From: Bugula neritina
Lineage: Eukaryota; Animalia; Bryozoa
Direction of reading: 5' to 3'
Length of the DNA: 64,000 nt
Assembly (NCBI GenBank): GCA_964035545.1
Contig: OZ037770.1
Coordinates: 4,124,662-4,188,661 of the forward strand
Shown: positions 20,448-53,116 of the stretch, one piece after another
Layout: each line of letters begins with the position of its first letter
Position numbering within the stretch: position 1 is the first letter of the stretch
Made by a program: the position numbers and the translations under genes
The notes under the pieces: model-generated
What the model saw: only the letters and a program-made list of their open reading frames with translations
What the model was told of the DNA's origin: nothing
Database searches by the model: none

Positions 20448-21509
20448 ATGCCAGTAAATTCTGAGCTAATTCATCAGATTGAATCAGAATTACTGGGGAC
20501 CACGTTTCACGTGAGTGACGACGAGGACACTGTAATGGCCGACGGTCTGTTAGACCTGGAGCTAGACACTGTTCTTAGTCAGTCCACACATGATTCACTG
20601 GTCTCTCGAGTGCATTCTAAAAGTTGTGACTCTCAGACTAGTAACAGTCGACAGTCACTAGAATTATGTTGTGAAGATCCACTGCGATCTGACAATAATT
20701 CTACTTTTGTAGACACACTCGCGCCCGTCTCTCCGGGCATGCCTTCCCTAGAGATGGCGTGGGACCCAGAGCCGGCCCCACCAACTTCCACAACCAGACA
20801 ACTGCCACCCCAGCTAAAAGCAACCTCTAACTGGACTACCCCTGCCACAGAGACAGAAATTAAGAAATATAGAGGGGATGACAATACCCGCGAATGCCAG
20901 CTATGTCAACAGCGGTTCACAACTCATCGTAGATTAAGAGTCCACTTGCCGCAGCATTTTATCACAACGTTCTGCCCCTGCGGGGAATATAGTGATCACC
21001 GAGACTATCTACTGCGTCATCAACGCACCATGCGTTGCTTTCAGGGACATGTATACGACGTGGATAAATCATCTTACTCAGCATTTCTCGAAGCTATCAG
21101 ACCTCTCATCACCGACCCAGCTCGGCTATCTTGCCTGGAGCAAGGCTTTCCCTCCCCGAGACCCATCATCTCGGAACCCGTAGATAAACCTACGAAGTCA
21201 TCTAATTCCCCACCTCTCAGCCCCATACGTCAACCACATACACTCCCCCGTGTCGTACTACAGAGGATAGACACGAGGACGTACACACTTCCTCCCCACT
21301 CCCATCCGCAGAACGAAAAAGACACCGGCAGCAGCAGACTTTCTCCCACTCATCCCCTCTGGCCCGCAACCTATGAGAAGTAGAGACTAGGGCAAACGAA
21401 CTGGAACAAGAGGTCTACAGACTGGCCCCCCACATTCATGCCGCATCCAGTGAGCTCCGGTCGCTACAGGAGTCTATCAAACGTATGAAACGAGCAGCCC
21501 AGGTTTAAC
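20448..21509 (+). CDS. Gypsy accessory ORF3 with two C2H2-like zinc fingers and a C-terminal coiled coil (frameshifted near 21300-21380)
   Basis: CQLCQQRFTTHRRLRVHLPQH and FCPCGEYSDHRDYLLRHQR; lies between integrase and the 3' LTR. Confidence 0.7.
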
Positions 21510-24702: not shown

Positions 24703-28280
<3,578 letters not shown>

Positions 28281-29116: not shown

Positions 29117-31223
29117 TTAGGGGTTTTCTTCTCTACTAAGCCCATCGAAGCCAGGAAACAGGTAAAGTCTTTTACGGAGAGGAAGAGTCTTCCAGATTAC
29201 TACCAAATTTCTGCTTCTCTCTGAATCTTCATCTGTATACAGTTTCTTAACTAGTTTAGTCTGTACCTGTAAAGTAAGTGATGACTAGTAAGATTGTTTA
29301 TCAATTCACTATTATAGCTGTGATAAAATGTAAATTTCAGCTTTTAGAATATTGTATCCCACTTGTAACAAATATGAACAGCAAACACTTTGGGAATTGT
29401 CTACCGCAGTCATATCATATAGCATATAGCAGTACAGTGGCACTAGTATATTAGCAAACTACAAGAACATATAGACAAGGAAGAGAAACTATAATCAATA
29501 TAGTGAGCCAATATATGCTAAAGGAATTGTAGGAGCAAAAACTACCAGGTAAACTAGAAAAAACTAGGAAGGATGTTCTGTTACTAAAACTATAGTGGAT
29601 ATTTTCTTTTAGAAGACAATAGGGTTTAAACATAGAAATGAATAAAATGATATGATGAGAAATAATATTTTAATTTCTTAAATAAAAGTTGAGCTAGCCA
29701 AAAAAGTATTGTGATTTTTAAACTTTAAAAGTATAAATAGTTTGTGAATTATAAACCCACCTGCTGAAAGATGGTGTAGAGATCCCGGTGACAGGCATGT
29801 TTGTAGATTGAAGATACTAGAGCTCTAATCATAGGAGATCCATACTCAGGATGTCTCTTTGATGCTAAAATACAATTAAGTGCAACCAAAATCTATAGGC
29901 TTATAGCCAGACCAAGTTTAACAGGTTTTAGTTATGGCATAGGCTTATCATATTTAAAATCTCAAAGTTCTGGAACACATTCTACTCTTTTCAGTTTAGT
30001 AGTTATTAGAATCAAAGCCCTTACAAAATGCGGGAATAATACAAAATCGGTAAACCACATTTTATGCAAGGTACAACAGCTCAGACAAGCTTATAGCCAA
30101 TCACTGTCTCTTATTATACTTACAGCAGACGTTACTCTTCAGAACAAGAAGATTATCAACATCCAGTCTGGTCATATGTTCTTCTATTCTATATTCTGGT
30201 GGTAAGACAGGTCTGATGGGTCTTATCACACTGGGTGTTTCAGGATATACAATATCATCCTCAGATTCAGAATGTGTAGAAGAGACAGCTTCAGTTTCTT
30301 CTTCTTGAGCTGCTGCAAGACCTGATCTCTCTGGATTCTCTTCAATGTTTGCTGCAACACATATAATTTAGTTATCAGGGAAGTAAGATAGATCAAAACA
30401 TCCATTTTCGTAGCAAAGTTGCCTAACCAATTTTATATGACACATTTCTGAAGATGTCCTTTTTTTTCTGTAAAAAATCATCTTAATGAAACAAAGAAGT
30501 TTTGACTACTGTGTAACCACTCAAATAAGTGTGTCCGTTTTTATTACAAAACAATATTCACCTTCGCTGCAAGCTTCCAGGATGACAACTGTAGGTTTAG
30601 GCTTTAAACTCAAAGGAGCGAGCAAATCATAAAAGTCTGTAAGGTTGACCTTCTCAAGGTCAGTTCCATAGATGCAGTTATCTTCACCACCATGAGTCAT
30701 AATAACCAGTATTTGACAACCCAAGCCATTGTTTTTTTCTCCTCTTATCTCAGACTTCACAGCCGACATCATTTCCTACAAATTTGGAAACAACTATAAT
30801 AATATTATATAATTGATACAAGTTTATGATAACTGAATAAAAGAATAATTTTTGAACTAGCAAAAAACAAAGTTTTGACCAGCAATAAACATGATTTGGG
30901 TTTTTTATTTAGGCCTTATTTTGAAGCATTGATAAACTAAGTAGTTAGGTGATGGTGTCAATTTTTAAGGTTTAATCAAGCAAGTGTCATGTTTCATATA
31001 CATGTAGATAAACTGAATGAATACTATTGCTTTCAGTCTAACAATATTATACCTCTGCTGTTAAGTCTGTGTGTGTCTCAACATCAAACTTAAGAGAGTT
31101 CAACATGACAGACATGTTCTCAACATCAGCATCTGAACCTTCCCTGCATAAGTCTGGTCTTTCGACAAAGTTCTTGTTGTTTATTATCAGAGCTCTTCCT
31201 CTCTCTCTGGTCATACTGAACAC
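29117..31223 (-). CDS. Caspase (peptidase C14A) domain exons: p20, acidic linker, p10
   Basis: VFSMTRERGRALIINNKNF..REGSDADV; LVIMTHG..IYGTD (catalytic His); KPTVVILEACSE (catalytic Cys); SKRHPEYGSPMIRALV; TLPLRKRLYLFPG. Confidence 0.92.
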
Positions 31224-34200: not shown

Positions 34201-37200
34201 ACTAGTATTTCTTTTATTCCTATGGAATGCGTGTTTTTCCTAAATGTATTAGTTAGCGTAGCACCAGTCCATTAACAGCTAGGTGTCATGATAGTAATGA
34301 CTGAATTAGTTATTGTTCCTAGCTAGGCATTATTATAGTAAAGCTGGATTAGCAACTATTCATAGCTACGCATAGGACTGCTCATATAACTAAAGATGAC
34401 TGGAAATTTCACTCGAAATTCGCTTAATTCGAGCAAATTCCTGCTGACCTTTTGTTATTACCCTGCGAATCCCCTGCGATTCAAGCAAACTCCCTCAAAT
34501 TCGCATAGAACTTTCTAGACTAGTTACATCCAAATATATTAAAGGATTGCTCTATCTTGTCTAATAAATGGCCATTTAGGTCAAACACACATAATATTGT
34601 GTTTTTCTAAGCATGCATTGACAAAAAGCATTTGACCAAAGGTAGAAAAAGTTAGTTGAAGTTGAGGGTGTAGATTGGTAACAGTCAAAACGCTGATTTT
34701 GAAATGAGCTGGGAAATGTGACGTAACAGCGCCAGCATTCCTGCTGGTCTCGTGACTATACAAATGAATAACAATAGAAATATGACTGTGAGATGTGATC
34801 TTTCAGCTCGTAATTTGTATATTTATAGAAGTGCAAATGTGAATTATCTCAATCTATAGTTTTTTGACATGTTAAATAACATGTATGTGATAACATTAGG
34901 CTGTATTTTGCTTGTAAACATAGAAAAAAGCATTGCAAAAACATGCATTCTTTAGGATGAATGCCTGCGATCGATCTAAACTAGGTCAGATTGTGCAATA
35001 TTACGGGCGCACCAAAGCTGATCTATATAGCGCACTGTAACTGCTTGAACGTTATTGGTTGATGTTGCGCTCAGCAACCTTGAATAGTAGCGTTATAGTT
35101 AGCACGTGCAGCATAGTTACTGGCGTTCACACGTCACGTATTAGGCTATTCTTTCTCATGGCTGAAAATTTTACCTCCCTCAAAATTGGAATTTTGAAAA
35201 GCTGTCTTCTAGGCATATTGTAGTGAATTTTGCCAGTTCACTATTATTATTTGTGGGTCTACTTAATCAAAGCCACTGCGACAGGTTGTTTACGATAAGA
35301 TATTTTATTAGTTATACAAATAATAAGAAGGTTATTTACTGCTAGCATGAATAGAAAAACGGTTACATAATTAACGAGCTTTAATACACAACTGTTCTAA
35401 ATGAAATCCCAAGCTGCTCTGCCGGCTAGCTACTCAGCGCACTGCAACTACGAGTAGCTAGCTCCACCTGCTATCAATTAATGTCATTGTCCTGATTGGT
35501 GGCTACTAGTGGTGCCACTACTGCCCATAGCTACACTCCGACAGTGTCGAACTCACAAGATGCATAAAACAATATAGAGTTAACCTTTTCGATTAATACC
35601 ATAATACTTGCGCCACTAAAATCTACCACAATATATCCCTTTGCAAAGTCACAATTGTTTGCATACACATTAGATTATAGTTCATAATTACAATGTGATT
35701 GTAATAAACTAAGATAGAGCAATCCTTTAAAGGGAGCCTTCAAACCAGTGAATTGAGTTGACTGCCAGCATATCAGATGAAGACACAACTCGGAGCTACC
35801 AAGCAAGGACACTTGTATACCTAATGCATGGTTATTTACCTTATACTTAGAATAATAGTAGTACATATAGTTTTCCACGTGATGTAAGGAGTTATCCTCT
35901 CTAACTCTTTTTCTATTTTTGGATATATATTGGAGTACAATAAAGGATAGTGAGTATAAACTTTCTTATTTGTTTATTAATAAATATTCTCAGCAAAGAA
36001 TCACTGTGTTCCATCAGCTAATAACCCACACCAATAATTACATGCAGCGATTAATAACATTCCACGCATAAAATTATTACAATACTCTATACTGGGCGGA
36101 GAAAGGAGAGCTGCTATAACTTATGTTCATCAGCTGAAAAACTCACCTTGTCAGTGTTTGAGAAGAGTTGTTTTATCTTTGGGTTGGTTGTTGGCTTTAG
36201 TTCAATTTTTATTAACTTCATGCCTTCTTCAGGTTGCAGATTGTCATCATCTTCAAAGAGATTACTCAGATCTTCATCATTTAACTCATCTACGATCACA
36301 TGATTAGACAGATTATTGCCAAAATTTGAAACCATAAACTGCACATTTTGCTTAGACAGGAGTAGAAGCAATTAATTTCAAAAATCACAATTAGATATGA
36401 TTTGTAGGGAAGTGTAGAGCAAAATTTGCAAAGCCTTTAATTTTACCAATACTGTGGGTTTAAAAAGTAAGTTCTGTCTAAAAAGTTTACCGTTTGATTT
36501 GTTCTGCTCTCTTCGAAGTTTGAGCTCAGAAAGGAACTTCTTCAATTGATTTGTTTCTGCTTCAGACAAAGTCTCACCTGAGCAAAACAGATGTAATTAG
36601 TAACATTAAAACTGGATGAGAGGCATTAGAAGAATATGAGACATAATCAAAGGCTCATGTATCAAGTTTACACTTTATAAGTCAGTCTAAAAGTTCGTTA
36701 AAGTAGCTGTGTAGTTTGCTAATGTCCATCTAGCTGCTATTAAAATTCATCAATGCCTGAAAAAACAGTAGATACGTTTTGATAGTGCAACAAACTATTT
36801 AAAAACATTTGGGCAAAGCAATCAAAGGTGAATCATAGTTGTAAACATACATGGATGAATTAGAGCACTGGGTATCTCTTCATTGTTACACAATATCTTT
36901 GAAGATCCATGACACTTCTTGACATTTAGTGGCAGTTGGCTTTTCAAAGATCGGAGACACCATTTAGGATGCAAAAGCTTTTTAGGGCAAGAAACCCCCA
37001 GTAGCATGCAGTGAGCACAGATGCAGGCAGTAACTGGTCGACTAGCAGTCCAAGTTTCCATGACATGTTTGAGAATGTTGTTTGTAGCTGAGATGAGTTT
37101 CTCCCACATCTTGGAAATGTGAGGAGCATCGGATGACACATAGAGTAAGACTCTTCTAGATTCATAGTCATGTGTCAGCTGTGTGTATGTCTCATCTTGA

Positions 37201-40200
37201 TAGACATTAGCTCCATTTCTCTTCACTTTCATTGTAGCAAACTTTTTAGAAAACAGTTCTAGCAAACCAACTGTCATTTGATAGTAGACATGCTGCGGTA
37301 AAGCCAGGCCCTTAAACTTTATCTCAGTGTGAAGGACCATATCCTTTGGTGAGGTGTAAGACACACCGTGATGTTCCTTAGCAAACTGAGGGACGATGAA
37401 GTACGGTTCATGGACATCATTTTCGAGAGGGCCATATAACAAACGGAATGTTCTAAGCAAGCAAACAGCAGTTTCAACATCATGACAGCTTTTAAATAAT
37501 GTTTCCTTTGCGATCAAATATGTTAGAAGAGATTTCATCATCAAACCTGTTGTTTTGAAGCAATTCACAGACTCTTCAAACTCTTCTGTTTCAATTCTCA
37601 ACCCTTCTTCGGAAACGCATGATTGAAAGTGATCAACTCTTTTCTGCCAGATCTCTGGGTTATGATGATACAAGACACAGAGTAGTTTGGTAACTTCTGT
37701 GATCTTGTGAAATATGTATAGTTTAAGTGCTTCAATATTCTTATACCAGAGAACTTTACCGCAGTCATGCATGTATGTGAGAATAGTATCTAGCTGATGT
37801 GGCTCTACCTCAAAGCCTTCTTTTGTCAATTCCACCAGAATAAATGAAAAAGAGCTGAATGCTCCGGTTAAAGACAAAACTTTCTCATTCACTTCTTCCC
37901 AGATCAGTGGCAAAAGCTTAACAAAGGGCTGACTGCTTGAAAGAAGAGAGCTCTTTATTATTTCAAACTCAGCATACTTGTCATCCTTTCCAATCTGATA
38001 AATATCTGCACTGGCAAAAACCTTTCCATTTGATGAGTTGAAATGCTGTATTTTCGCAAAATTTCCATCTGAACCTTTCTCTTCATCAAGAACCTCTTTG
38101 CACAGCTGTTCAGATACTCTAAGAAAGTTTTCTTTAAGCTGTTGGAAGTGTTGACTCTGGAACTTATCCTTGTGTGTAAAGACAAGCTTAGGTGGGCCAA
38201 GAGATGGATGGGCAAGATAGAGGTGAGACATAAAGTCAAAGGCCAACTTTCTGACAGCCTCTGTGTTTGTAAACTCATTTGAAATCTGATCATACTGCTC
38301 CATGTTGACTACAATTACCGGTACACAATTCTGTCTCAGTGTTAAATGGTATGTGATATGGTAAACTTCTTGGCCTCCCATATCTATGAGACGAAGAGTT
38401 GTACCATCCACCTCCACCTCTTCTACATTGAACACTTTTGTGGTCTCATCATACTCTGCATTAGGACTTCTGTCAGTCAGAACTCTCTTCTTATCAGTGC
38501 TCTGTAATGTTCTGATTAGACTAGTTTTACCTGCCATGGTGTTTCCCAAAACCACTATTGTAGCAAATGGCAGATTTCTACCAGCACCCTTAGCCAAATC
38601 TGTGTAGTATTGTCGCACAGCATCTAATCCTCTTTGACAGACTTCTAGTGGAGGAGATGTAAGAGCATCACATCTACGTGTATAGAGAGACTGAAGACGC
38701 GTTAGCTGTAGTATCTCAGGGTTCAAAGATGTCATGGATTTGTTGTAGGATATATCCAGTGTGTACAGATTACTCAATGTACACACTGAAGATGGTAGAC
38801 TGGTGAAGTTATTCATTGATATGCGTAGTTTCTGTAACTTTTGTAGATTCTGTATTCTAATAATATATTATATTCATATTATCAGCACATACTAAAGGTA
38901 TAAGTGAGATCTAATTATAGCTGTCATAAATCTACAATGATAGTAAAGGATTATACACCGAATTTGGACGTATGAAGTGGCAATGGCTACAGTGACCTTA
39001 TTATATAAAAGCCTTTAAAGTAGTATGGGATATAATTGTAATTCTAGAATTTTCATTTATTGACATTCTCACAATTATCAAGTGGTATTTTGATATTCCA
39101 AATCATTTACAACACTACAACTACAATGAATTGGTAAAAGATATTAAAGAAGTATTTTACTGTCACAATTCATAATTCTTCCATCATAAACAATATTGTT
39201 CTATAATATAACATGTAGTTGAGTATAACTGCTTACACTGATATTTTATTAGATATGTATAATATATCTTATATATATGTACTCTATATAATACAGTTAA
39301 TCTGCTACCGGGAACCATGTAACCGGTACTACCTGTTCCATGGGTCGGACTGTCGGCGACTAAACCGATACCCCCTAATGTCTTGACATTAGGGAGGGTG
39401 TACTGGACATCCATGTAGAACTAAAAATAACATCTACTAAAAATCTGAAAGACCATTCCAGTGGGTATCTGTGGCAGCCCTCAAGGGCGTGTACAGACAA
39501 ACGTGTATAACGGCCAGCCACTGCAGCAGGTTGTAAATGCTAGCATATCTTGACCTGTTCTTGCCGCTAGATCCCATTTACACCCTGCCGAGAGAGAGAA
39601 CATGGTAACGCGAAAGCCAAGTTCACTTAACCACTTCGCATGCAGTTTTATGGACTATGACAATGGAAACAGTATTTGATACCGGCACGAACGTCGCCCG
39701 GGTTAACAAGGTTCGCGCTGGTCTGCTCCCGCTCCGGCAGCCAGTGAAAAGTCAGCTAGGACGCAATGGAAAGTTCAGAAAAGTTCTGAGACTAGCAGAA
39801 TGGAATGTTAGAACATTACTAGACCGGAATAATTCAAAAAGACCAGAGAGGCAGACAGCACTTGTTGCAAAAGAGCTGGGCCGATATGATATCGATATTG
39901 CAGCTTTGTGTGAAACTCGGCTTGCCCTGAATGATAGCCTTGTTGATAATGGGTACACATTCTTTTGGAGTGGAAAAGGCGAGGAAGAAAGAAGAGAATC
40001 AGGGGTGGGGTTTGCTATCAGGAATACAATTATGCCTTATCTAGAACAAGAACCAACAGCAATAAGTGATAGAATTATAAGCATGAGACTTCCACTGAAA
40101 AAGAATCATTATGTGACAATAGTGAGTGCTTACGCTCCAACAATAACAAATACGGAAGAAAAGAAAGAGGAGTTTTACAATAAATTGAGAGAAACAGTAA

Positions 40201-43200
40201 AGAATATATCCATCACAGACAAACTGATTATAGCCGGTGACTTTAATGCAAGAGTAGGGTGTGAAGCTCAAAATTGGCCAGGCGTTATTGGTAATCAAGG
40301 AATTGGAAAATGTAACACAAATGGAGAGCTGCTACTGGCATTCTGTTCTGAATACCAGCTTGTTATCACGAACACAGTATTTAAGCACAGGCAGCATCAT
40401 AAAGTCACCTGGATGCACCCACGTTCTCAGCATTGGCACCTCCTCGATTATGTGATTACAAGACGGAAAGACCAGAATGATGTGCTAGATACTAGGGCAA
40501 TGAGAGGTGCTGATTGCTCAACTGACCATACCATGATCAGGTCCAAGCTAGCATTTGCATTAAGGAAAGCAAAGAACAAGACAAGAGGGAACTCCGCATG
40601 CAAACTCAATGTGGGGAAACTACAAAATCAGGATATGCTACAGGAGTTTCAGAAACAGATGGATAAGGCAATGGACTATAGGGATGATGATGGTGTAACG
40701 TTAGAAGAGAGATGGGGAAGGTTAAAGATCTCAGCCTTCAACACAGCTACCAAAGTCTTAGGTAGAGCAGAAAGAAAGCATCAAGATTGGTTTGATGACA
40801 ATGATGCAAAGCTGAATGCATTACTTAATGAACGAAATATGGCTAAATCAAAAGCACTACAGAGAAGAACAAGAAGTAGCACTGACCGATTAGCGCAAGC
40901 ACGCAGCAAGTTGCAAAAATACACTCGAGAGAAAAAGTCTCAATGGTGGGAGGAAAAAGCAGAATCACTCCAACAGGCAGCTGATAAAAACAACATGAAG
41001 GCATTTTACAATGGCCTTAGAGAAGTCTATGGGCCACAGAACAGGGGAATCACCCAATTGCTGGACCAAAGTGGTAAAACAGTACTTACAGCAAAGAATG
41101 ATACCTTAAAAAGGTTCGCCCAACATTTTGACCTGTTGCTGAATGTACCAGGGGAAGTGGATCAGGAAGCTCTCAATAGTCTCACAAATATGCCACCCAA
41201 TTTAAGCCTAGATGATATGCCAAGTTTTGATGAGCTTCTGGATGCTATAGATGCAACCAAGGAGAATAAATCTCCTGGAGAATGTGGCATTCCAGCTGAG
41301 GTGTGGAAGTACGGTGGAATCAGGCTTAAAGAGAGACTATATGATCTGATTGCTTATATATGGAGTAATGAGAAGATGCCACAGAACTGGAAAAATGCGA
41401 ACATTGTGCCCATTTTTAAAAAGGGTAGTAGGAAGGACTGTGGTAATTATAGAGGAATCTCGCTTTTGTCTATAGCTGGAAAGATTATGGCCCGTATCAT
41501 CCTCAACAAAATCAATGTAAATATAACTCCAGGAATACTTCCAGAAACACAGTGTGGCTTTCGAAACAGCAGGAGCACCATTGATATGATATTTAGCTTT
41601 CGACAAATTCAAGAAAAATGTGCTGAACAAAACATGGAGCTGTATGCTGTATTTATAGACTTTACAAAAGCCTTTGATACAGTATCAAGAGATGGCCTCT
41701 GGAGGGTACTGAAGAAGTTTGGCTTAACTGAGAAGGTCACCAACCTGATAAAAGCTCTTCATGCAGGCATGCAAGCCAAGGTAGTGCAAGGTAGAGATGC
41801 TTCAAATGAGTTTGTAGTAACCAATGGTGTCAAGCAGGGGTGTGTTCTTGCGCCAACACTATTTTCATTATACTTGACCGCTATGCTTGAGGTGGCATTT
41901 CAAAATGTAAATGAAGGGATTTATATTCAAACTCGACATGGGGCTGACCTCTTTAATGTGGCTCAGTTCAAGTCTAAGACCCGTACTACCAAACACCTAG
42001 TCAGAGAGATGTTGTTTGCTGATGACAGTGCTTTGGTGGCACATTGCGCTGCAGATATGCAGGTGCTAATGAACAACTTTGCAAAAGCAGCGGCTCAGTT
42101 TAGCTTGAAAATCAACATAAAAAAGACAGAATGCATGTACCAACCAATCAAACTCATCCACCCTCCACCTGAACCTGAAGTTGTCATGATAGATCAAGAA
42201 CCAGTTGTACTTGCCTCAGACTTTACTTATCTAGGAAGCACTGTTTCCTGTATGGCAAAAATAGATAAAGAGCTACGGAACAGATTAGGCAAAGCAAGTG
42301 CGGCTTACGGTAAGCTGCAGCAGAGACTCTGGAACAACAGACACGTATCCATCAGGGTAAAGTGTAAAGTCTACAGAGCGGTGGTGCTCTCAAGCCTGCT
42401 GTATGGAGCAGAAACATGGACAATATACAGGACACAGGTGAAGAAGCTAAGCGCTTTCATGATGAGGCAACTGAGAGACATAATGGCTGTAAAATGGTAT
42501 GACAAAGTTACGAATGAAGAAATATTAAGACGTGCCAATTTGCCAAGCTTGGCCGACATCCTTATAGAAAAGAACTTGAGATGGCTAGGCCATGTGCACA
42601 GGATGGAACATAGCCGGCTACCAAGACAATTGCTCTACTCTCAGCTGAAAGAGGGTAAAAGAAATACAGGGCGACCTAGACTCAGACTTAAAGATGTTGC
42701 TAAGAGGAATATGAAATGGAGAGCAATAAACTTGAGTTCATGGCAGCAGACAGCTGACAACAGAGCTGCGTGGAGAGCTGCAACCAAATCTAAGCTTAAT
42801 CCATAAAACAGTCATAGTCGTATCGACTGACTGCAAGAGAGAGAGATATAATACAGTTATAATCAAACTAGATAGAGACAAAGTTAATATGTATGAGTCT
42901 GCATGAAGTTTTACAGAAAGTATGTCAGGGAAGAACATAATACTATTCTCTATATTCTACCTAACAATGGTAAGAAATACACTTTTTGAACAGAAAGTTC
43001 AAGTTTTGATCAACTTTGCTATATGATGAAATACAAGTTTAGGGTACCATTGCACTATCTTGCAGGGATATTACGTGTGCATTCTTTGAAAGACAGTTTT
43101 GTAATTTATAAAGGAAAGCGAATTATTGAACGTAATATAGATATGAAAAACTTGTTATGTATATACTATTTCGAGCTTTACAGAGGAGAGATATGAACAC

Positions 43201-46200
43201 CATAATGTAGTTTAACTGTATTGACTATTTAGTTGAAAAATGTTTAAAATGGTAAGTCTATTGTGACACACAAACCTCTCAGGTAGAGTAGATATTTCAC
43301 AGTTCCCCATATCCAACTCTTTAAGTGATGTGAGTGATGACACAACTTCTGGTACTGTGTTGAGAGGATTGTCTACTATGTCTAGTTTCTCTAACTGAGT
43401 CAGCTGACACAGACTGTAATATAACGTTTTTAATATATGTTATAGTCAGTAGTCCACTTGTAGTTTGGTATAGTTTGACATATATACAGAGTATAATTAC
43501 AGATCGTTGCTATAACTTATACCACATGGTTGTGAGGGACAAGATAACTACTATATCAATTCAATTATTTAATTTGACTACTTGACCACTTACAGGTGCA
43601 AATATAATATTTTTTTATAATAGAGTACAAGTATTCAATACTCAGTAAATACTAGTAAACTAGAAATGACTGCTTACTATATAAATTAGATTTTTGTAAA
43701 ATAAGAATATAATATTATAATATAATTGCATATTTTAAAATTATGGGATTTCCATGATATTACAAACCATTACATGCATATAACTTTAAAAAAATAATTT
43801 TATATTTTAATTTATATAATGACTTACCATAATGCTACTTCGTAATACTACTTTATGTAAGCATATAAAGTTGTGAAATATTGATTGTTTCATACAACAC
43901 AAAGTTGTGACACACAAACCTCTCAGGTAGAGTAGATAATTCACAGCTCCACATATTTAACTCTTTAAGTGATGTGAGTGATGACACAACTTTTGGTACT
44001 GTCTTGAGAGAATTCTCTGTTATGTTTAGTTTCTCTAACTGAGTCAGCTGACATAGACTATAAACATATACAGTGTTTGATATATTCAGTTTTACTTATA
44101 CAGAGTGCAATTACTAGAGTTACTTCAGCTACCACATGATTATGAGGGATAAAAAACTATACTATCAAGTTATTTCTTCATAGCAAATCTATATAATGTA
44201 ACATACTATCATAAAGCTGGACTACTAGGTAAAAATATAGCAATTTATCATAATAGTACACAAGTATTTATTTTTAAACTCACTGAATACTATATAATAG
44301 ACTAGAAATTATTGCTAAGCCTAGGGCCACACTGTGCGTATTTTCGCATGCGAACATTTAAACCAGGAGTAGCAAAGGTGTCCACTGTATGCGTTGAGAA
44401 AACATTTGCACTTGTCGCTCAGCATTCTGAACGCAAGTGCGAATCCTCTCTGTCGCCGTCACCTAATTGGCTGGTAGTTATTAGCAAGCTCAATTCTTTA
44501 ATTTTAGTGCTATGTTCCAGTAAATTGCGTTTTGTTAAAAGCAAGTGCAATTTAAAAATGAAAGCTTCATTTATCCCGCATTACTGACACTACAGTGGAC
44601 ACCTTTGCTACCTGTGGTTTCAAATTTCGCATGCGAAAAAACGCACAGTGTGGCCCTAGGCTTAGATGTTTCACGCATGGACGCTTCCCATCTAGACGAT
44701 ATTTATAGATTTTAGTGTAATATATGTATTTTATGCTATTATTTAGCACATAATAGAAAGCAAATAAGCCACCAGCAAGCCACTTAGCCTAGGGCCACAC
44801 TGTGCGTATTTTCGCATGGGCAAATTGAAACCACAGGTAGCAAAGGTGTTCACTGTAAGTAGATGTAATGGGGGAGGTTCCTGCTCACTTTTCCTCACCG
44901 TCGAGTCTACGACTCGTAGGTGTTAAAAAGTTGAGCTAGAACGCCCCCCAATACATCTACTCCAACTTATTTTTATTAAATGATAATTATAAAAAAAATA
45001 TAATTTGTGTTTATACTTATAAACACAAATTGTATTTATATTATATAAAAATTTGTTTTAACTTGGTCATTATTTTTCATAGAAAATAAAGTTTTGAACG
45101 TTATAACTCTAAAATACGGGTTGCGAAGGAGATTCGGTAGATTTTATTATATCACCATCGCTTGTTGATATCAATAATTTATTACCAACCGGTGCTTGTA
45201 ATTTAGGAATAGCGTAACCCGGTATATTATTTAGCGTAATAAGATCGACAATATCTATGCCAGTTTTTACAATATTACCATTGCTCGAAAGCATTAATAA
45301 TTTAGCTCCGATTGACGGTTGTATTTTAGGCATAGCGAAATTAGACACATTAGTTTTCGTAATAACGCCGCTAACGCTTAAATTACTATCTTCAATGCTA
45401 CCGATATTAGTTGATACGGTTAACTTATTATTAGGATTATTTATAAGGGGTATAGGTTGTTTATCTATATTAGTTTTTGTAACGACTTTGCTAATACTTA
45501 TACTACTATCGACAACGCTACCGATATTAGTTGACGTGGTTAATTTATTTGTTGGATTTTGTATGAAAGGCATAGCGTAATTAGATACATTAGTTTTTGT
45601 AATGAAATCGTCAACTTTTAAATCGCTATCTATAACGTAACCAGCGTTAGTTGATATAGTTAACTGATTAATGGGGTTTTGTATGAGAGGCATAGCGTAA
45701 TTAGACGATTTCATAAAAACGTCTTCAACGCTTAAGCTACTATCAGCGACATTACCTTCTTCATTCCATATACGACTAATGTTTTATTAGGGTTTTGTAT
45801 TTTTGGTATACTTGCGTCATCAACGTATTGTTTTGTAGCGACGTCTTGATAGTCAACAGGATCAACGACTCTAGATATTTTATTAACGCCTATATCTAAA
45901 GTACCCGTAAGCGTATCACTACCGTCTCTTAAAACGAAATCGATATTTATTCTATTAATTACGTCGTTTGACGTTCCTCCAAATATATACACAGGACTCC
46001 ATTTATAATATAATTTTAATGACACTAAATCGAATGGTATAAATATAAGCGCGTCATTATCAATTGTTACATCATCGGATTTACGACTTGTAAAATTATT
46101 CGAACACTCTAATATTAGCCCGATATTTTACCCGCGTTGATTATTTCTAATATAGGATTTTAATATACCGAAGATTATGTACGCCGCCTCAAATTAAATA

Positions 46201-49200
46201 TTCTTTAGTAATGTGCTCGAAAGGTTTTGTCGTATCTCCAATTATTAGCGTTAATTTTTTATCTTTCCAATACAAAGGATTATTACTAGGACGCTTGTGA
46301 AATTGTATTAACGTGTAAGTTAATTCTATTCGTTTATCTACTATAAAACCCAACAATAACGCCGTGCTAATTTCATTACTAAAAGTTTGTATAAAATTAT
46401 TTTGATTTTCATTTATACTTCTTTCGTATAATTTTCTTCTTTTATATTTTCGGAAGAACCTCGAAATATATACACAAAACTCATTTATATATACTTATAA
46501 TAAAGTTTAAATGCTACTTATTGAAAAGGTATTGCCTCACTAGTATTTTCAGTTAATGGAAAATCTGTAAGAATTATGTTATCGGGTTTATGACTGGGAT
46601 AAGTTTTTGAAAGCGCTATTGTTGTTGAAAAGTTTTTATTAGCTTCAATAGTTTTATTATTCGGAATTTTAATATACGGAACACTATGCTCATTAACACT
46701 AATATCGTAAAAAGTATCTTCATTAGATGGCCCGGATAATGCGGTGCTATCCTGAATATGTATAATACCGAATTGTTTAAGAGAATCCATTTATTATAAG
46801 AAAAAAGTTAGTAAGCTATAGCTTGACCGCTTCCTTCTAAAATATTACTAATATTATTTCGAGGTTGACTAAGCATTTTTAATACGGCTCAATTTTTAGC
46901 GTTTAAATTTTATTTTTGACCTAGCTTTTTTAATGCGGCTCGATTTCTTATTGCGTTATCAATTTTTTCACCGGCCGCGTTACCGGCTTTAGCTATAACT
47001 TTTTCCCAATTGCCGTGGCCGCTTTTCTTACGCTGGCATTTCCAGCTATTTAACTTACTACGTTTCTAATAGAATCGAATATTCCACCACCGGCGTAGTG
47101 TCTTTGTAATCGTTGTCTTTTATCGTAAACATACATTTATTATAGGCAAAAAAGAATGTTTTTGTACTCGTTACGAGTAATTTGTTTCATTCTAAGTAAT
47201 TCGTCTAATATAGCTACAATTTCGTTTTGCACTCCCGTATTCCCTGCTTTAACGCTAGAAAATAAAAGTTGAAGTCGTTCCACTAAAGCGTCGGGGTTAA
47301 ACGATAAATAAACTACTCCGTCACCGATTTGCCTTTTAGCATTTTTACTATCGGCGAGTCTCGCTCTTTGAGGATATAATTGTTCCCAAATAGGTCTACC
47401 GATATGTCTCCGTGTTTACTTTGATATATAGCACCGCCGTTATCGAGTATATTAGCGTAATTCGCTAAATCATTTTCGCTATAATCTATCGGCGTTTTAC
47501 GCGTTAAAAGACTTAAAAGTCCTCTAATCGCTTGATATTCTTCACCGTCAAAAATTATTTTACCGTCATTAAAATTTATAGGTTTAGTACCTATAACGTG
47601 TCTATTACCATCCTCTTTCACGTTATAAGCACCGGATTCTAAGCCCGCTAAAGCAGTTTGAGTAAATTCGTCTAAATTTATAACTCCATCCGTTATAGCC
47701 GGTTGAACATTATAATTGGGTAATGTAAGCAATTGTTTTAACGCTTCAGTCGTTTGAGCTTGCGGAGTCGTTACGGGTTGAAAATATTTTTCTTGAGCCA
47801 TAGCGGCGTTCAATTCCTGCGCGCGCTCTCATTTAAATTCTTCTTTTATTCTATTCTTTCAAGATATAAAATCTTGTACGATCTCATCTCTTTTCGGCGG
47901 ATCATTAATCTTTAATAAACTCATTTATATAGACACAGATTTGTGTCCACTGTTGTGTCTAGTGTCTACGTTTGTTTCCACTATACACGTTCTAAAACAT
48001 TCAAATTTACCCATGAGTTTTGCGACTCGGAATAACCCAGCCATTTTACTAAAGCTTTTTTACCTTTCTTTTTAATTACGCGCTCTATTCTATAAATTTT
48101 TTGACTCGTCTTTTGCAATTCCTGTTCGTAAAAAAATCCTTGAATTTCTTCTCCTCCCGAGTCAATTAATTCATAAGTCGTCGGATTCGTGTATAATATT
48201 TTATTTATCGTAAACACTTCCTCAGCCCATCGTTCCTATTATCGCCGAGGCAATACGACTGTGTCGTTGTTTAGCGAGCGTAGAATCCGATATAGCTTTT
48301 AGTTCGTTGAGCATAATTTTATCGCATATTTCGTTTCTAGTCTTAGTATCTTTATTATTAGCGTGACATATCGTGTCTCATAGCTATAGCGTCGTCTCGA
48401 TCTACCGGTTTACTCCATTCTTTAGGAGTCATGTCTTCATTAAGACGCTTATTTAATTTAGTACCGGGACCTAAAAAACTATGACCGGGATAATGTAATT
48501 CAACAGGTAAATTATTTATTAAATTATTCGCTAAACTCGACCCAACAAACAAAGTTTGTTTACCTCCGCATTGACCGCAAGTACCGTAACTGATTAGTCT
48601 ATTGTTTTTACTTACTTTTTCTCCGTAATTAAGAGTTTTAGTTTTAATTTTACATTTACAACAGTACATTTATTATAGTAAATTGAAATACAAAATCTTT
48701 CGTGGTAAAACAAAATTAATCGTAATAATAATCGTTACTCCCTATAAGTAGAAGGGGTGTTATCATTGGAATGTCGGGGTGCGGTAAAACTACTTTACTC
48801 TGCAATTTACTGTTACAACCTAATTGGCTTGATTATAATAAACTCATGATTTACGGTAAAAGTCTCGATCAACCGGTATATAATATTATGCGAAAAGCTA
48901 TCTAAAGAAAATTTTTTAGAAGTATTTAAAAATAGCGATGTAATAATTAATTCCGGTATAAACGTAAATCGTATTTTAAAAAATTACGCTACCGGTAACG
49001 GTAATATAAACGCTGAATTTGTTGAATCGAGTGATAAAGTTTATGACCCTAGTGATTTAGATGCTAATAATAAAAATCTAATAGCGTTTGACGATTTAAT
49101 GCTTGAAAAACAAAACGTGTGCAAAAAATATTACGTAAGAGGACGACATAATAACGTCGATTGTTTTTATTCATCGCAAAATTATTTTAAGCTACCCAGA

Positions 49201-52200
49201 GAGTCTATTCAAGAAAATGCAAATTTTATTTGTTTTTTTTCTCAAGACGGTAAAAACCTAAGCGATTTACATCGAGATCACGTAAGTGGTGATATGCCTT
49301 TACACGAATTTAAAAACTTTTGTTATAATGGATGGCAAAAACCTCACGGCTTTATTACTTTGGACCTATCTTCTTCGAAAAACAATGGAAAGTATAGGCA
49401 CGGGTTAGACGAGTTTTATATATGCGACTAGACACTAGTGTCCACTTTTGTGTCTAGTGTCCACTTTTGTGTCTACATTAGTGTCCACTTTTAGGTCTAG
49501 TGTTTACTTTGTATTCACTTTGTGTCTAGTGTCTGCATTTGTGTTCACATTATATATACACTAGTGTTTACTTTTATATTTAAACGTTTATTTTTTAATA
49601 AAAATAAGTTAGAGTAGATGAAATGGGGAGCGTTCCAGCTCACTTTTTTAACACCGGGGAGTCGTAGACTCGACTGTGGGGAAAGGTGAGCTGGAACAAC
49701 CCCCCCCCCCATTACATCTACTACTGTAGCGTCAGTGGTGTGGCATAAATAAAACTTTCATTTTCAAATCGCACTCGCTTTTAATAAAACCCAATTTACT
49801 GAAATATAGCACTAAAATGAAGGAATTGGGTTCGCTAATTAACTACCAGCCAATTAGGTGACGACAACAGAGACGATTCGCACTTGCGTTCAAAATGCTG
49901 AGCGACAAGTGCAAATGTTTTCTCAACGCGTACAGTGGGCACCTTTGCTACTTGTGGTTTTAATGTTCGCATGCGAAAATACGCGCAGTGTGGCCCTAGG
50001 CTTACTATTAATTACATTTTTATAGCACAACAATATATAATGGCTTAAAATTTTGTTATTCCCACAATATAATAAACAATTGCATATATATGTGTAACTT
50101 TAAAACACTGCATTTTCTATTTTTCATTTATACAATGGCATACCATAACAACACTTGGTAAGCATAAAAGTTGTCAAATATTGAATCTTTAAAAGAACAC
50201 AAAGTTGCGACACACAAACCTCTCAGGTAGATTAGATAATTTACAATCCACCATATTCAACTTTTCAAGTGATGTGAGTGATGACACAACTTCTGGTACT
50301 GTCTTGAGAGAATTCTCTGTTATGTTTAGTTTCTCTAACTGAGTCAGCTGGCATAGACTATAAACATACAGCGTTTAATATATTTAGCTTCACTTATACA
50401 GAGTACAATTACTACAGTTACTATAACTACCACATGATTATGAGGGATAAAAAACTATACTATCAATTTATTCCTTCATAACAGATCTATATAATTCAAC
50501 ATACTATCATAACGCTTGGCTATATTAGGTAAAAATATAACAGTTTATTGTAATAGTATGCAAAAAAATTAATTTTAAACTCACTGAATACTAATAAACT
50601 AGAAATTATTGCTTACTATTAATTACATTTTTATAGCACAACAATATATCATGGCATATAACTTTAAAACTGTGTTATTCCCACAATATTATAAGCCATT
50701 GCATATATGTGTGTAACTTCAAAACATTGCATTTCATATTTTTCAATTATACAATAAAATACCATAACAATACTTGGTAAGCATATAAAGATGTCAAATA
50801 TTGAATGTTTAAAACAATACAAACGTTCTGCCACACGAACCTCTCAGGTAGAGTAGATAACCTACAGCTCCCCATATCCAACTCTTTAAGTGATGTGAGT
50901 GATGACACAACTTCTGGTACTGTGTTGAGAGGATTATATCCTATGTCTAGTTTCTCTAACTGAGTCAGCTGACACAGACTGTAATATAAAGTGTGTAATA
51001 TATGTAGTCTGCATTACTATAATATTTTATACTATACTCACATTTTGTTTTCAACCAGGTAAAACTATATACAACTCAACTACCAAGCAATTTATTGTAG
51101 CATTGTACATGCAAAGCATGGGAAGTTAACAGTTTATTATAATAGTATACAGGTATTCAATTATTATATATACTCAGTGTGTGAATACTAACCAACTATA
51201 CAACTGCTTACTATTATTTACATTTTTATAACACAAGAATATATAATGGCATAAATACCTTAAATTATGTTGTTTTCACAATATTACAGACCATATTTCA
51301 TATGGAATTAAAAAAAATTGCATTTCACATATTTTTCAATTATATAATGACATGCCCTAATTATACTTGGTAATAAGAAACTATTTTATGATTTCAAGTA
51401 ATAAATGTTTCAAACAATACAAAACCTGTGACAAACAAACCTCCCAGGTAGAGTAGAAAATTTACAGCTCTTCATATCCAACTGTTTAAGTGATGTGAGT
51501 GATGACACAACTTCTGGTACTGTGTTGAAAGGATTATCTTCTATGTGTAGTTTCTCTAACTGAGTCAGCTGACATAAACTGTAATATAAAGTGTATGATA
51601 TATATGTAGTCTGCATTACCATAACATTTTATACTATATTCACATTTTGTTTTCAACCAGGTAAAACTATATACAACTCAACTACCAAGCAACTTATTGT
51701 AACATTGTACATGCAGAGCATGAGAAGTTAACAGTTTATTATAATAGTATACAAGTATTCAATTATTATATATACTCAGTTTGTGAATACTAATCAACTA
51801 TACAACTGCTTACTATTATTTACATTTTATAGCACAAGAATATATAATGGCATACCTTAAATTTTGTTATTTTCACAATATTACAGACCATATTTCATAA
51901 AGAATTAAAAAAATTGCATTTCACAGATTTTTCAATTATATAATGACATAACCTAATTATACTTGATAAGGAACTATTTTATGATTTCGAGTATTAAATG
52001 TTTCAAACAATACAAAACTGTGACAAACAAACCTTTCAGGTAGAGTAGATAATTCACAGCCTTCCATATTCAACTCTTCAAGTGATGTGAGTGATGACAC
52101 AACTTCTAGTGCTGTGTTGAGACGATTCCATCTTATGTCTAGTTTCTCTAACTGAGTCAGCTGACATAAACTGTAATATAAAGTGTGTAATATATGTAGT

Positions 52201-53116
52201 CTACTGTATCATATATATAATAATATAATCTGTACTCAGCTATAATGTAAATTATGGAGCAAACAATTTTGTTGAAACAGGGTACAGCAAAAAAAAGCTA
52301 TTATATGCCATGTTATACGTGTAATGGGTGCCCTGTGTAGAATTGAGTGATTAGATGTACATGTATAAAGACATCCTGTAAGTTTAATAGATAAGGGTTA
52401 CCCTACAATGTAATGCTAATATATAGTATGATTTATAATTATAAATGGTTTACTTTGTTATAGCTAATCTGACACAAATTAGCATGTATTTAACATTCCG
52501 AAAATTTTTTATTTTCAAATATATGGCTACATATATTATACTTATATATATATATATATATATTGCAGATAAAAACCTTCTGTATAATCCTACACGTATA
52601 CATGTACTACATATAGTATGTTACTTCTGTATTCAACTACATAAAACATGTTTTAATTTGTGATGGCATGTGTAACACTACAAACAGTTTCCCGCTGTCT
52701 AATTTCTACAACTTGTTCAGCTGGTAGAGATACAATGTTATACATATTACTATAGCTTTTTATAGTGCATGATTACATCATGAGTATAAGAATGTACTTC
52801 AGCATTGACTTAGATACATGCACCGTGGGTTCTATTTATCACAACTAAACTCATTTAACATTTACACAGCTATCTTAATAGACACTCACTGGTCTAGACT
52901 TGCTCTGTCAGTCAGGATAGAAACATTTAGACACAGGGCTTTACCGGCAACCTCTCCAATGTTGTTTGGAATTCTCCCTCCTAGTTTTAGATCTGTGATG
53001 TAAAAACTTCCAACTTCACGTTTCACATCAGCAGTAGTATATGACTTGGTTTTAGTTTTCCATACATCTGACCAGCTCACAGGAGGCTGTCCAGAATGTC
53101 TGAACCAGATTCTCAT
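29117..53116 (-). CDS. LRR-ROC-COR (Roco) protein with a C-terminal caspase domain, 15 coding exons, about 1385 aa
   Basis: Exons 53116-52890, 52170-52033, 51578-51441, 50978-50841, 50357-50220, 44057-43920, 43413-43276, 38856-36851, 36577-36491, 36289-36147, 31223-31053, 30775-30562, 30351-30124, 29864-29761, 29266-29117. All introns are GT-AG, phases match, total 4158 nt with no internal stop. The start codon is tentative. Confidence 0.85.
31385..33137. mobile_element. Non-autonomous hAT element in an intron
   Basis: TIR CAGGGATGTAGTGG / CCACTACATCCCTG; exact 8-bp TSD ACTATAAC (31377-31384 and 33138-33145); no long ORF. Confidence 0.92.
36851..38856 (-). CDS. Large exon: last LRRs, ROC GTPase and COR domain
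   Basis: LTSPPLEVCQRGLDAVRQY (LRR-ROC link), P-loop GNTMAGKTSL, switch I ETT, DMGGQ (G3), FTHKD (G4), and COR-like YMHDCGKVLWY and YFIVP. Confidence 0.92.
39300..42845 (+). mobile_element. Full-length RTE-clade LINE, antisense within an intron
   Basis: 14-bp TSD ATATAATACAGTTA (39286-39299 and 42846-42859), (AG)n 3' tail, single long ORF. Confidence 0.95.
39657..42806 (+). CDS. RTE ORF: APE endonuclease plus reverse transcriptase (1049 aa, intact)
   Basis: WNVRTL, ALCETR, GDFNA, LDYV, STDH (APE); QCGFR, DFTKAFD, GVKQGCVLAP, LFADD, YLGS; RWLGHVHRM..GRPRLR (RTE C-terminus). Confidence 0.97.
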   Translation: MTMETVFDTGTNVARVNKVRAGLLPLRQPVKSQLGRNGKFRKVLRLAEWNVRTLLDRNNSKRPERQTALVAKELGRYDIDIAALCETRLALNDSLVDNGYTFFWSGKGEEERRESGVGFAIRNTIMPYLEQEPTAISDRIISMRLPLKKNHYVTIVSAYAPTITNTEEKKEEFYNKLRETVKNISITDKLIIAGDFNARVGCEAQNWPGVIGNQGIGKCNTNGELLLAFCSEYQLVITNTVFKHRQHHKVTWMHPRSQHWHLLDYVITRRKDQNDVLDTRAMRGADCSTDHTMIRSKLAFALRKAKNKTRGNSACKLNVGKLQNQDMLQEFQKQMDKAMDYRDDDGVTLEERWGRLKISAFNTATKVLGRAERKHQDWFDDNDAKLNALLNERNMAKSKALQRRTRSSTDRLAQARSKLQKYTREKKSQWWEEKAESLQQAADKNNMKAFYNGLREVYGPQNRGITQLLDQSGKTVLTAKNDTLKRFAQHFDLLLNVPGEVDQEALNSLTNMPPNLSLDDMPSFDELLDAIDATKENKSPGECGIPAEVWKYGGIRLKERLYDLIAYIWSNEKMPQNWKNANIVPIFKKGSRKDCGNYRGISLLSIAGKIMARIILNKINVNITPGILPETQCGFRNSRSTIDMIFSFRQIQEKCAEQNMELYAVFIDFTKAFDTVSRDGLWRVLKKFGLTEKVTNLIKALHAGMQAKVVQGRDASNEFVVTNGVKQGCVLAPTLFSLYLTAMLEVAFQNVNEGIYIQTRHGADLFNVAQFKSKTRTTKHLVREMLFADDSALVAHCAADMQVLMNNFAKAAAQFSLKINIKKTECMYQPIKLIHPPPEPEVVMIDQEPVVLASDFTYLGSTVSCMAKIDKELRNRLGKASAAYGKLQQRLWNNRHVSIRVKCKVYRAVVLSSLLYGAETWTIYRTQVKKLSAFMMRQLRDIMAVKWYDKVTNEEILRRANLPSLADILIEKNLRWLGHVHRMEHSRLPRQLLYSQLKEGKRNTGRPRLRLKDVAKRNMKWRAINLSSWQQTADNRAAWRAATKSKLNP
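43276..43413 (-). CDS. LRR cassette exon 6 (138 nt, phase 2-2)
   Basis: LCQLTQLEKLDIVDNPLNTVPEVVSSLTSLKELDMGNCEISTLPE. Confidence 0.9.
43920..44057 (-). CDS. LRR cassette exon 5 (138 nt, phase 2-2)
   Basis: LCQLTQLEKLNITENSLKTVPKVVSSLTSLKELNMWSCELSTLPE. Confidence 0.9.
44319..44661. mobile_element. PIF/Harbinger-like MITE, copy A
   Basis: TIRs GCCTAGGGCCACACTG..CAGTGTGGCCCTAGGC, flanked by TAA/TTA. Confidence 0.8.
45109..46002 (-). pseudogene. Polinton fibre/spike-like repeat protein (frameshifted)
   Basis: GTLDIGVNKISRVVDPVDYQDVATKQYVD motif, followed by ~41-aa repeats (NYAMP.IQNP.NKLT.STN.G.V.DS). Confidence 0.6.
47145..47924 (-). pseudogene. Conserved Polinton hypothetical protein (disrupted)
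   Basis: GLLSLLTRKTP..YSENDLANYANIL, then in another frame PDALVERLQLLFSSVKAGNTGVQNEIVAILDEL; I recognise both as recurring Polinton motifs. Confidence 0.55.
47981..48235 (-). pseudogene. C-terminal fragment of Polinton retroviral-type integrase with chromodomain
   Basis: RWAEEVFTI..TYELID..GEEIQGFFYEQELQK..YRIERVIKK..LVKWLGYSESQNSWV; the catalytic core is deleted. Confidence 0.85.
48236..48669 (-). pseudogene. Parvovirus-VP1-like phospholipase A2 (PLA2X) with an N-terminal CxxC..CxxC module; frameshifted
   Basis: MYCCKCK..CGQCG; HYPGHSFLGPGTKL (Ca-binding loop); PVDRDDAIAMRHD (catalytic HD); continues after the frameshift as ..TRNEICDKIML. Confidence 0.8.
48690..49431 (+). pseudogene. Polinton A32/FtsK-like DNA-packaging ATPase (disrupted)
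   Basis: Walker A IIGMSGCGKTTLL at about 48760, Walker B IAFDDL, RGRHNNV..SQNYFKLP, KPHGFITLD; stop near 48904. Confidence 0.88.
50220..50357 (-). CDS. LRR cassette exon 4 (138 nt, phase 2-2)
   Basis: LCQLTQLEKLNITENSLKTVPEVVSSLTSLEKLNMVDCKLSNLPE. Confidence 0.9.
50841..50978 (-). CDS. LRR cassette exon 3 (138 nt, phase 2-2)
   Basis: LCQLTQLEKLDIGYNPLNTVPEVVSSLTSLKELDMGSCRLSTLPE. Confidence 0.9.
51441..51578 (-). CDS. LRR cassette exon 2 (138 nt, phase 2-2)
   Basis: LCQLTQLEKLHIEDNPFNTVPEVVSSLTSLKQLDMKSCKFSTLPG. Confidence 0.9.
52033..52170 (-). CDS. LRR cassette exon 1 (138 nt, phase 2-2)
   Basis: LCQLTQLEKLDIRWNRLNTALEVVSSLTSLEELNMEGCELSTLPE. Confidence 0.9.
52890..53116 (-). CDS. Probable first coding exon (N-terminal cap) of the LRR-Roco-caspase gene
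   Basis: Open frame MRIWFRHSG...DRASLD ends at a strong phase-2 donor (CA|GTGAGT) that matches the LRR exons. Confidence 0.6.

Follow-up and report, generated by a model that had tools for sequence, protein, structure and literature searches.

The stretch of DNA described here, referred to as the window, comprises 64,000 nucleotides (nt) of the bryozoan Bugula neritina (GenBank assembly GCA_964035545.1, contig OZ037770.1, positions 4,124,662 to 4,188,661 of the forward strand) and carries on its minus strand a gene in which a first coding exon is followed by an array of six leucine-rich repeat (LRR) cassette exons, a large exon with a Roc GTPase domain and a COR-like region and, further downstream, by a predicted splice path, the exons of a caspase. 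These six cassettes probably constitute the modular sensor arm of a cytosolic receptor, which would belong to a clustered and germline-diversified family of LRR-Roc-COR(-caspase) receptors in this animal. Positions are those of the window unless a contig is named.

The cassettes are six exons of 138 nt, all on the minus strand, located at 52033..52170 (cassette 1, variable motifs DIRWN and NMEGC), 51441..51578 (cassette 2, HIEDN and DMKSC), 50841..50978 (cassette 3, DIGYN and DMGSC), 50220..50357 (cassette 4, NITEN and NMVDC), 43920..44057 (cassette 5, NITEN and NMWSC, with a first half resembling that of cassette 4) and 43276..43413 (cassette 6, DIVDN and DMGNC), with start-to-start distances of 592, 600, 621, 6300 and 644 nt. 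Each is preceded by AG and followed by GT, and the borders are in phase 2 at both ends, such that a single base at the 5' end closes a codon and two bases at the 3' end open the next one. Since the same phase is shared by all six cassettes and by the flanking exons, any subset of cassettes stays in frame. Each cassette encodes two LRRs of 23 amino acids (Pfam LRR_4/LRR_8, E-values from 1e-5 to 6e-8), and 27 of the 45 alignment columns are invariant across the six. A profile built from them matched exactly these six exons within the window (E-values from 1e-29 to 1e-31), the next match having an E-value of 0.38. The array went unreported by Tandem Repeats Finder in the window, because its period exceeds 500 nt and the introns are divergent. 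Thus, the six-cassette array of a preliminary description made from the letters of the window is confirmed by splice borders and Pfam matches, including the symmetric phase and the two repeats per exon, and all peptide words quoted there, among them the variable motifs, were recovered as written.

The first coding exon lies at 52887..53116, some 720 nt upstream of cassette 1, and contains an ATG at 53116-53114, 76 codons plus 2 nt and the phase-2 donor CA/GTGAGT (a slash marks the exon border). This exon together with about 1.7 kb further upstream is 86-92% identical in some 15 sister loci. It matched no Pfam family and displayed no hydrophobic signal or transmembrane stretch by hydropathy, and by the same analysis no signal peptide or membrane span is apparent in the gene as a whole. 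On the other side of the array, the large exon at 36851..38856 is open for 677 codons and opens with about three LRRs, followed by the Roc domain (PF08477, E 6.8e-8, 33.2 bits against a cut-off of 27 bits) with the P-loop GNTMAGKT and the motif DMGG, and by the COR-like region. Its acceptor, TTAG/A at 38856, is in phase 2 and matches the cassettes, so that the N-terminal LRR region is joined to the Roc exon by phase-matched splice sites; the same order of LRRs followed by Roc is present in full-length homologues from the bryozoan Watersipora. Homologues of the Roc-COR exon at 27-39% identity carry PF16095 or PF25497. The best named ones are Watersipora proteins designated as MFHAS1-like (33-38% identity), while the closest matches among unnamed proteins come from JGI metagenome assemblies. 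No N-terminal similarity was found between this gene and the Watersipora proteins.

Downstream of the large exon, a splice path that remains in frame leads from a predicted donor at 36851 (T/GTATGT) to a predicted exon encoding an acidic linker at 36147..36289 (AG/AT ... AAG/GTGAGT) and from there to an acceptor at 31223 (TAG/GTG), which opens the first caspase exon. The linker exon is collinear with the linker of five LRR-Roc-COR-caspase proteins of Watersipora, and its single E-values are weak (0.03-0.95), with order and splice phases in agreement with these proteins. Caspase exon 1 (31053..31223, minus strand; Peptidase_C14, PF00656, E 2.1e-10) is in phase 0 at both ends, and caspase exon 2 (30548..30775, minus strand; PF00656, E 4e-5) contains the catalytic His (THG) and Cys (EACS) motifs, aligning with SHG and QACS of the Watersipora proteins; both exons are above the Pfam cut-off. 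Two further caspase-domain exons, with approximate borders at 29949-29758 and 29266-29126 on the minus strand, are indicated by alignment to the same proteins. The in-frame path reproduces the order and local sequence of LRR-Roc-COR-caspase proteins of Watersipora subatra, and at least nine Watersipora gene models have LRRs and the same caspase in one protein, with those aligned to the window also covering the COR end. In Bugula itself, at least 35 sister Roc-COR exons are followed on their own strand, at a distance of 1-7 kb, by the counterpart of caspase exon 2 (Peptidase_C14). The splicing of the Roc-COR exon to the caspase exons is a predicted join. Between the two sets of exons, the non-coding segments 33140-34155 and 36087-36824 are 82-88% conserved in sister loci (L037, L042), and the gene of the window is distinguished by two insertions of about 1.9 kb.

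This gene is one member of a large family. In a search of the 216.0-Mb Bugula neritina assembly, 875 first-look cassette candidates were obtained, and all 150 that were scored had E-values below 1e-23, being located nearly all on contig C6 between 2.5 and 6.3 Mb. The first coding exon has 53 matches in the genome, each ahead of a cassette array, and among 160 first-look candidates for the Roc-COR exon at least 66 were scored as such, most of them open, with about 31 in the cluster on C6 and a second cluster on contig C1. Gene orientation on C6 is organized in blocks (minus at 2.5-4.2 and 5.4-5.55 Mb; plus at 4.48-5.24 and 6.03-6.26 Mb), which suggests large inversions or inverted segmental duplications within the receptor cluster. 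The analyses of cassette variation reported below rest on 174 cassettes from the window and 50 further stretches of the genome, about 20% of the candidates, corresponding to 150 distinct nucleotide sequences. The AG..GT borders are kept in 166 of these 174 cassettes, which lie between a first coding exon and a Roc exon; some sister genes contain stops or broken cassettes. Sister genes lying fully inside the sampled DNA have 3, 4, 4, 6, 14 and 14 cassettes, in line with the proposal of a differing exon copy number, here among genes of one genome. In one of the arrays with 14 cassettes (locus L044, C6:4088000-4097999), a four-cassette block occurs twice at a distance of about 2.4 kb, with identical cassette peptides and almost identical introns, which points to very recent unequal crossing-over.

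Variation within the cassettes is concentrated in a few codons. Among the 150 distinct cassettes, entropy reaches 2.1-3.2 bits at codons 11, 13 and 14 of the first LRR and codons 34, 36, 37 and 39 of the second LRR, while codons 16, 18, 42 and 45 are at 1.0-1.4 bits and the 34 remaining ones stay below 0.7 bits. These seven hypervariable codons correspond to x positions of the LRR motif LxxLxLxxN/CxL. When the homologous 47-residue repeats of a natural Watersipora protein were modelled with AlphaFold (pLDDT confidence of 70-90 in the core), five-residue strands aligned with cassette positions 9-13 and 32-36, and hence codons 11, 13, 34 and 36 fall on the strand, alternating with buried Leu, Ile or Met, with codons 14, 37 and 39 directly after it. 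The sheet formed by such strands lines the concave face of an LRR solenoid. The modelled repeats thus place the seven variable residues at exposed beta-strand or post-strand positions, as expected from the suggestion that they face a ligand.

The ratio of nonsynonymous to synonymous diversity (piN/piS) in the pooled cassettes is 1.79 at the seven hypervariable codons as compared to 0.47 elsewhere. Rates of change were assessed independently of any tree, using 39 disjoint pairs of recently duplicated cassettes whose flanking introns are still alike, with a mean difference of 2.9%. With the flanking introns as reference (0.029 changes per site), nonsynonymous change at the seven variable codons amounts to 0.163 per site (odds ratio 6.6, p = 3e-43), while the framework is at 0.044 per site for synonymous change (odds ratio 1.55, p = 0.007) and 0.0195 per site for nonsynonymous change (odds ratio 0.68, p = 0.004). 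Relative to synonymous change in the framework, the seven codons again display an excess of nonsynonymous change (p = 3e-17). Thus, the exposed codons change about six times faster than the neutral yardstick and the framework is conserved, which bears out the anticipated diversification of surface sites.

The silent sites of the framework follow a pattern of their own. Four-fold degenerate sites of the framework differ by 0.084 on average, a plateau which is independent of intron divergence. Introns of most pairs are about as divergent as random sequence (0.26 as compared to 0.29 for shuffled sequence). Codon bias is not the cause of this likeness, since codon choice is specific to the position, with Ser encoded by TCA at three positions and by TCT at a fourth. 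When the window gene is compared with four sister genes, four-fold divergence is 0.13-0.34 in the Roc-COR exon as compared to 0.03-0.07 in the cassette frameworks, whose silent sites are hence 4-5 times more alike than those of the Roc-COR exon in the same genes. The near-invariance of the framework even at silent sites, initially noted in six exons, therefore holds genome-wide, and recent origin alone is insufficient to account for it. Because silent framework sites in recent duplicates are not slower than introns (0.044 vs 0.029), constraint at the nucleotide level is disfavoured, and continuing exchange among cassettes, i.e., concerted evolution, is the favoured explanation.

Sequence comparison clearly points to such exchange between sister genes. 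Cassettes 1 and 2 and the introns belonging to them lie in a tract of about 1.25 kb (51150..52400), each 100-nt bin of which shows 99-100% identity to a sister gene located 640 kb away at C6:3.53 Mb, whereas its flanks are 81-98% identical, mostly about 90%. Within these two cassettes the genes differ in a single amino acid, K or R at codon 36 of cassette 2, which is one of the hypervariable codons. The sister gene has 14 cassettes as compared to six in the window gene, and the two arrays diverge from the third cassette on; the tract is read as the product of gene conversion or ectopic exchange. At a smaller scale, the sharing of the first but not the second repeat between cassettes 4 and 5 was substantiated, with two differences in the first 69 nt and ten in the last 69 nt (Fisher p = 0.03), and the second half of cassette 5 is closest to a cassette of another gene (C6:4089817), from which it differs by 2 nt. 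Introns upstream and downstream of most cassettes of the window gene have different nearest relatives in other genes, and the intron downstream of cassette 6 is closest to the last-cassette introns of sister genes. Variable patches in recent duplicates change in an all-or-none manner, with 32 of 54 unchanged and 4 of 54 carrying six substitutions (variance/mean 3.1), and some of these pairs have identical introns. The search for donors of replaced patches in the sampled fifth of the cassettes gave a mixed result, as some patches occur identically in other cassettes and many are without a match, which a sample of this size would lead one to expect. Recombination, which had been put forward from cassettes 4 and 5, is hence backed by matched pairs, the tract and mosaic introns, but not by pooled statistics: the PHI recombination test on pooled cassettes was not significant, and linkage disequilibrium was near zero at all distances and thus uninformative.

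Transcription was assessed from sequencing runs at the level of contigs, using 30 bins. One run (X12) has the signature of DNA, since each of the 30 bins is covered. Two others (X1 and X3) have that of RNA: there is depth where bins contain the first coding exon or cassettes 1-4 and none in purely intronic bins; one of the RNA-type runs is labelled 'symbiont metagenome'. At the level of the family, the cassette genes are thus transcribed and spliced at the predicted borders. Some RNA contigs contain joints that map as first coding exon to cassette 2 or 3 and as cassette 1 to cassette 4, with canonical borders. Such joints were rejected as evidence of skipping, since the sequences on the two sides of the junction recur in other cassettes, so that the joints cannot be assigned to one gene and the contigs may derive from paralogues.

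Several mobile elements are located in and around the gene. The 6.3-kb spacing between cassettes 4 and 5 is due to the insertion of a 5.7-kb element with terminal inverted repeats (44307..50013), without which this intron would measure about 455 nt. The arms of the element are 174 nt long and 93% complementary, with additional nested inverted repeats; its two longest open reading frames (ORFs) matched no Pfam family and no recognizable transposase. Within it are found a tandem repeat of 120 nt in 3.2 copies at 45328-45705 and, at 44315-44665, a copy of about 350 nt whose 75-nt ends are those of the whole element. The intron between cassette 6 and the large exon contains, in antisense orientation to the gene, the ORF of a LINE-type retrotransposon (39657..42806, plus strand) with endonuclease and reverse transcriptase (Exo_endo_phos, E 4.4e-10; RVT_1, E 1.6e-31). 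Upstream of the conserved 5' region of the gene, a reverse-transcriptase fragment is present at 55400-56401 on the minus strand (RVT_1, E 6.6e-9), and similar sequence occurs in several sister loci (L033, L047, L049). Beyond the caspase exons, a GC-rich block on the plus strand (12440-21383, up to 56% GC as compared to about 34% nearby) contains ORFs with reverse transcriptase, integrase zinc-finger, rve and SH3_Tf2-1 domains and resembles a Ty3/gypsy-type retroelement with long terminal repeats. Between this block and the caspase exons, an ORF of 436 amino acids at 25080-26390 on the minus strand matches DUF7869 (E 2e-9) and is possibly part of another mobile element.

In the proposed modular receptor, each cassette would add two turns to the LRR solenoid, with framework residues building the fold and the seven exposed residues per cassette forming a putative ligand-binding face. 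Diversity of this face could be generated in the germline by three routes, namely unequal crossing-over, by which whole cassette units are duplicated in tandem or lost, with the phase-2 symmetry preserving the frame; exchange between cassettes and with sister genes in patches from about 25 nt up to tracts of more than 1 kb, which would keep the framework nearly identical even at silent sites while reshuffling variable patches; and positive selection for new residues at exposed positions. Binding of a ligand to the LRR arm might then be relayed by the Roc-COR GTP switch to the linked caspase, so that sensor, switch and executioner would be united in one protein similar in its working to an NLR or an inflammasome, and targets could be pathogens, symbionts or non-self colonies. 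Certain observations weigh against this proposal. The ligand and the function of the receptor are putative, and no RNA read or contig could be assigned to the window gene itself, so that expression and splicing apply to the family. The COR assignment of the approximately 430 residues after Roc relies on matches that are in the right order and below the Pfam cut-offs (COR-A, E 0.015; COR-B, E 0.047). The large exon has its own stop 27 nt past the proposed donor (36824-36822, reached by the unspliced frame), and the first caspase exon has an in-frame ATG, because of which Roc-COR and the caspase may instead be encoded by a conserved pair of adjacent genes. Synonymous change at the hypervariable codons is raised too (0.075 per site), and some of the excess at these codons represents imported patches rather than new mutations, such that a formal omega is not cleanly separable from exchange. 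With linkage disequilibrium near zero everywhere, pooled statistics cannot separate recombination from recurrent mutation either.

According to a rival, mutational explanation, hot spots of mutation or micro-conversion would generate the excess of amino-acid change without adaptive meaning. It would account for the raised synonymous change relative to introns, for patches changing in blocks of 4-6 nt next to unchanged introns, and for imported patches that are identical in other cassettes. However, the seven codons undergo nonsynonymous change at twice the rate of their synonymous change and at 5.7 times the rate of the introns, and a random draw of whole segments predicts a silent rise in the framework of about one third of the rise at hypervariable codons, when the observed one is 10-30 times smaller than the latter. 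Besides, the variability coincides precisely with the exposed positions of the strand, between which lie the invariant buried Leu, Ile or Met, and in brown-algal ROCO LRRs it is these positions that are under selection, making a purely mutational origin improbable. That the array might instead be a decaying or non-functional repeat, composed of pseudo-exons or satellite left by duplication and riddled with transposons, could be envisaged from the two transposable elements in its introns and the damaged cassettes of some sister genes. Yet the six cassettes, the first coding exon and the 677-codon Roc-COR exon are all open with intact AG..GT borders, the framework is under purifying selection, RNA-type contigs cover exons only and both transposons are confined to introns, and decay is accordingly given very little credence.

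All diversity documented here is germline diversity, and two further explanations concern other possible sources of diversity. Variable skipping of cassettes would yield isoforms with different LRR numbers and surfaces on top of germline diversity, for which the common phase of cassettes and flanking exons, a brown-algal precedent with multiple splice variants of LRR exons (PMC11378527) and the joints seen in RNA contigs can be invoked. However, these joints comprise just 21-30 nt per side at a likeness of at least 93%, and cassette ends recur widely, the first 26 nt being identical in 9-38 and the last 26 nt in 0-14 other cassettes of the sample, so that the contigs may represent sister genes with a different cassette order. 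Cross-mapping of paralogues is indeed proven by loose contig ends in which cassette-1-like exons are preceded by another cassette. Skipping is regarded as rather unlikely. A somatic DNA rearrangement assembling cassettes in each cell, as in the variable lymphocyte receptors (VLRs) of lampreys, could draw on the large pool of near-identical cassettes with short shared framework stretches, and one DNA run contains a few joints inside the array (51002 to 52023; 52194 back to 52025). Against it, the cassettes are ordinary spliced exons of complete genes and not donors beside an incomplete gene, and each DNA joint is a single short contig with sides of 27-36 nt that paralogues or copy-number alleles explain equally well; this is the least credible of the explanations, with a very low probability. 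The broader notion that cells or zooids use cassettes combinatorially, by regulated skipping or somatic exchange, giving an anticipatory and partly individual-specific repertoire, is likewise held to be quite improbable; if true, it would add to VLRs and the germline families of plants and algae a third way of diversifying receptors by means of LRRs. A germline-diversified LRR-Roc-COR(-caspase) receptor family thus accounts best for the array.

Comparison with known systems places this family among several types of receptors. It shares with the VLRs of lampreys and hagfish the presence of many LRR cassettes with a conserved framework and variable residues on the concave face. However, the cassettes of VLRs are not exons but donors, from which sequence is copied into an incomplete gene in somatic cells, whereas the bryozoan cassettes are spliced exons of complete germline genes. 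With NLRs, inflammasomes and plant NLRs it has in common the logic by which sensing through LRRs would be coupled, via a switch operated by a nucleotide, to an effector of cell death, as well as clustered, fast-duplicating families with diversifying selection on exposed LRR residues. Nevertheless, the switch is a Roc-COR GTPase and not a STAND ATPase of the NACHT or NB-ARC type, and the caspase would be encoded in cis or next door instead of being recruited via CARD or PYD; as no Pfam match to NACHT or NB-ARC is present on the large exon, the gene does not belong to the NLRs. To our knowledge, large and fast-evolving intracellular receptor families in animals are represented mainly by NLRs, and cassette-exon LRR-Roco genes come only from brown algae; a literature search retrieved no description of such a family in bryozoans. 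Should the family be confirmed, bryozoans would be counted among the phyla that possess an innate recognition system specific to their lineage, with implications for colony fusion and allorecognition, for the way in which the bryostatin-producing symbiont is controlled and for defence against pathogens. The cassettes would also provide a natural case of opposing forces within 138 nt, where exchange homogenizes the framework and selection diversifies seven codons. The vertebrate MFHAS1/MASL1 has the same LRR-Roc-COR order without a kinase and gives the NCBI name of the Watersipora homologues, but we know of no cassette exons, hypervariable LRRs or caspase in MFHAS1. In humans, MFHAS1 is a single gene (PMC11378527).

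The closest described system is the LRR-ROCO family of brown algae, whose shuffled LRR exons were reported by Zambounis et al. 2012 (PMC3341825) and Teng et al. 2024 (PMC11378527), and the comparison with it drawn in the preliminary description is apt, as the array feeds a Roc-COR exon. The algal genes have 72-bp phase-2 exons with one LRR each, four selected sites on the concave face, reported alternative splicing and up to 47 genes per species (PMC3341825; PMC11378527). Both systems have an LRR array ahead of Roc(-COR), tandem short symmetric phase-2 LRR exons in variable number, and variation with positive selection at a few concave-face positions, where diversifying selection is found in the bryozoan as well; a role as immune receptor has been proposed for the algal proteins. 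They differ in that the bryozoan host is an animal and its cassette of 138 nt encodes two non-equivalent LRRs, with an N-type and a C-type asparagine-ladder position, as compared to 72 nt and one LRR, and in that at least 66 Roc-COR exons were scored as compared to a maximum of 47 algal genes per species. The bryozoan genes are clustered, with about 31 in 4 Mb of one chromosome, whereas the algal ones are described as dispersed, and the bryozoan gene has a caspase downstream, whereas the peptidase domain present in three algal genes is a different one. A common origin of the algal and bryozoan cassette design is considered unlikely. Thus, the design of the brown-algal LRR-ROCO family is present in an animal, where it has apparently been reached independently.

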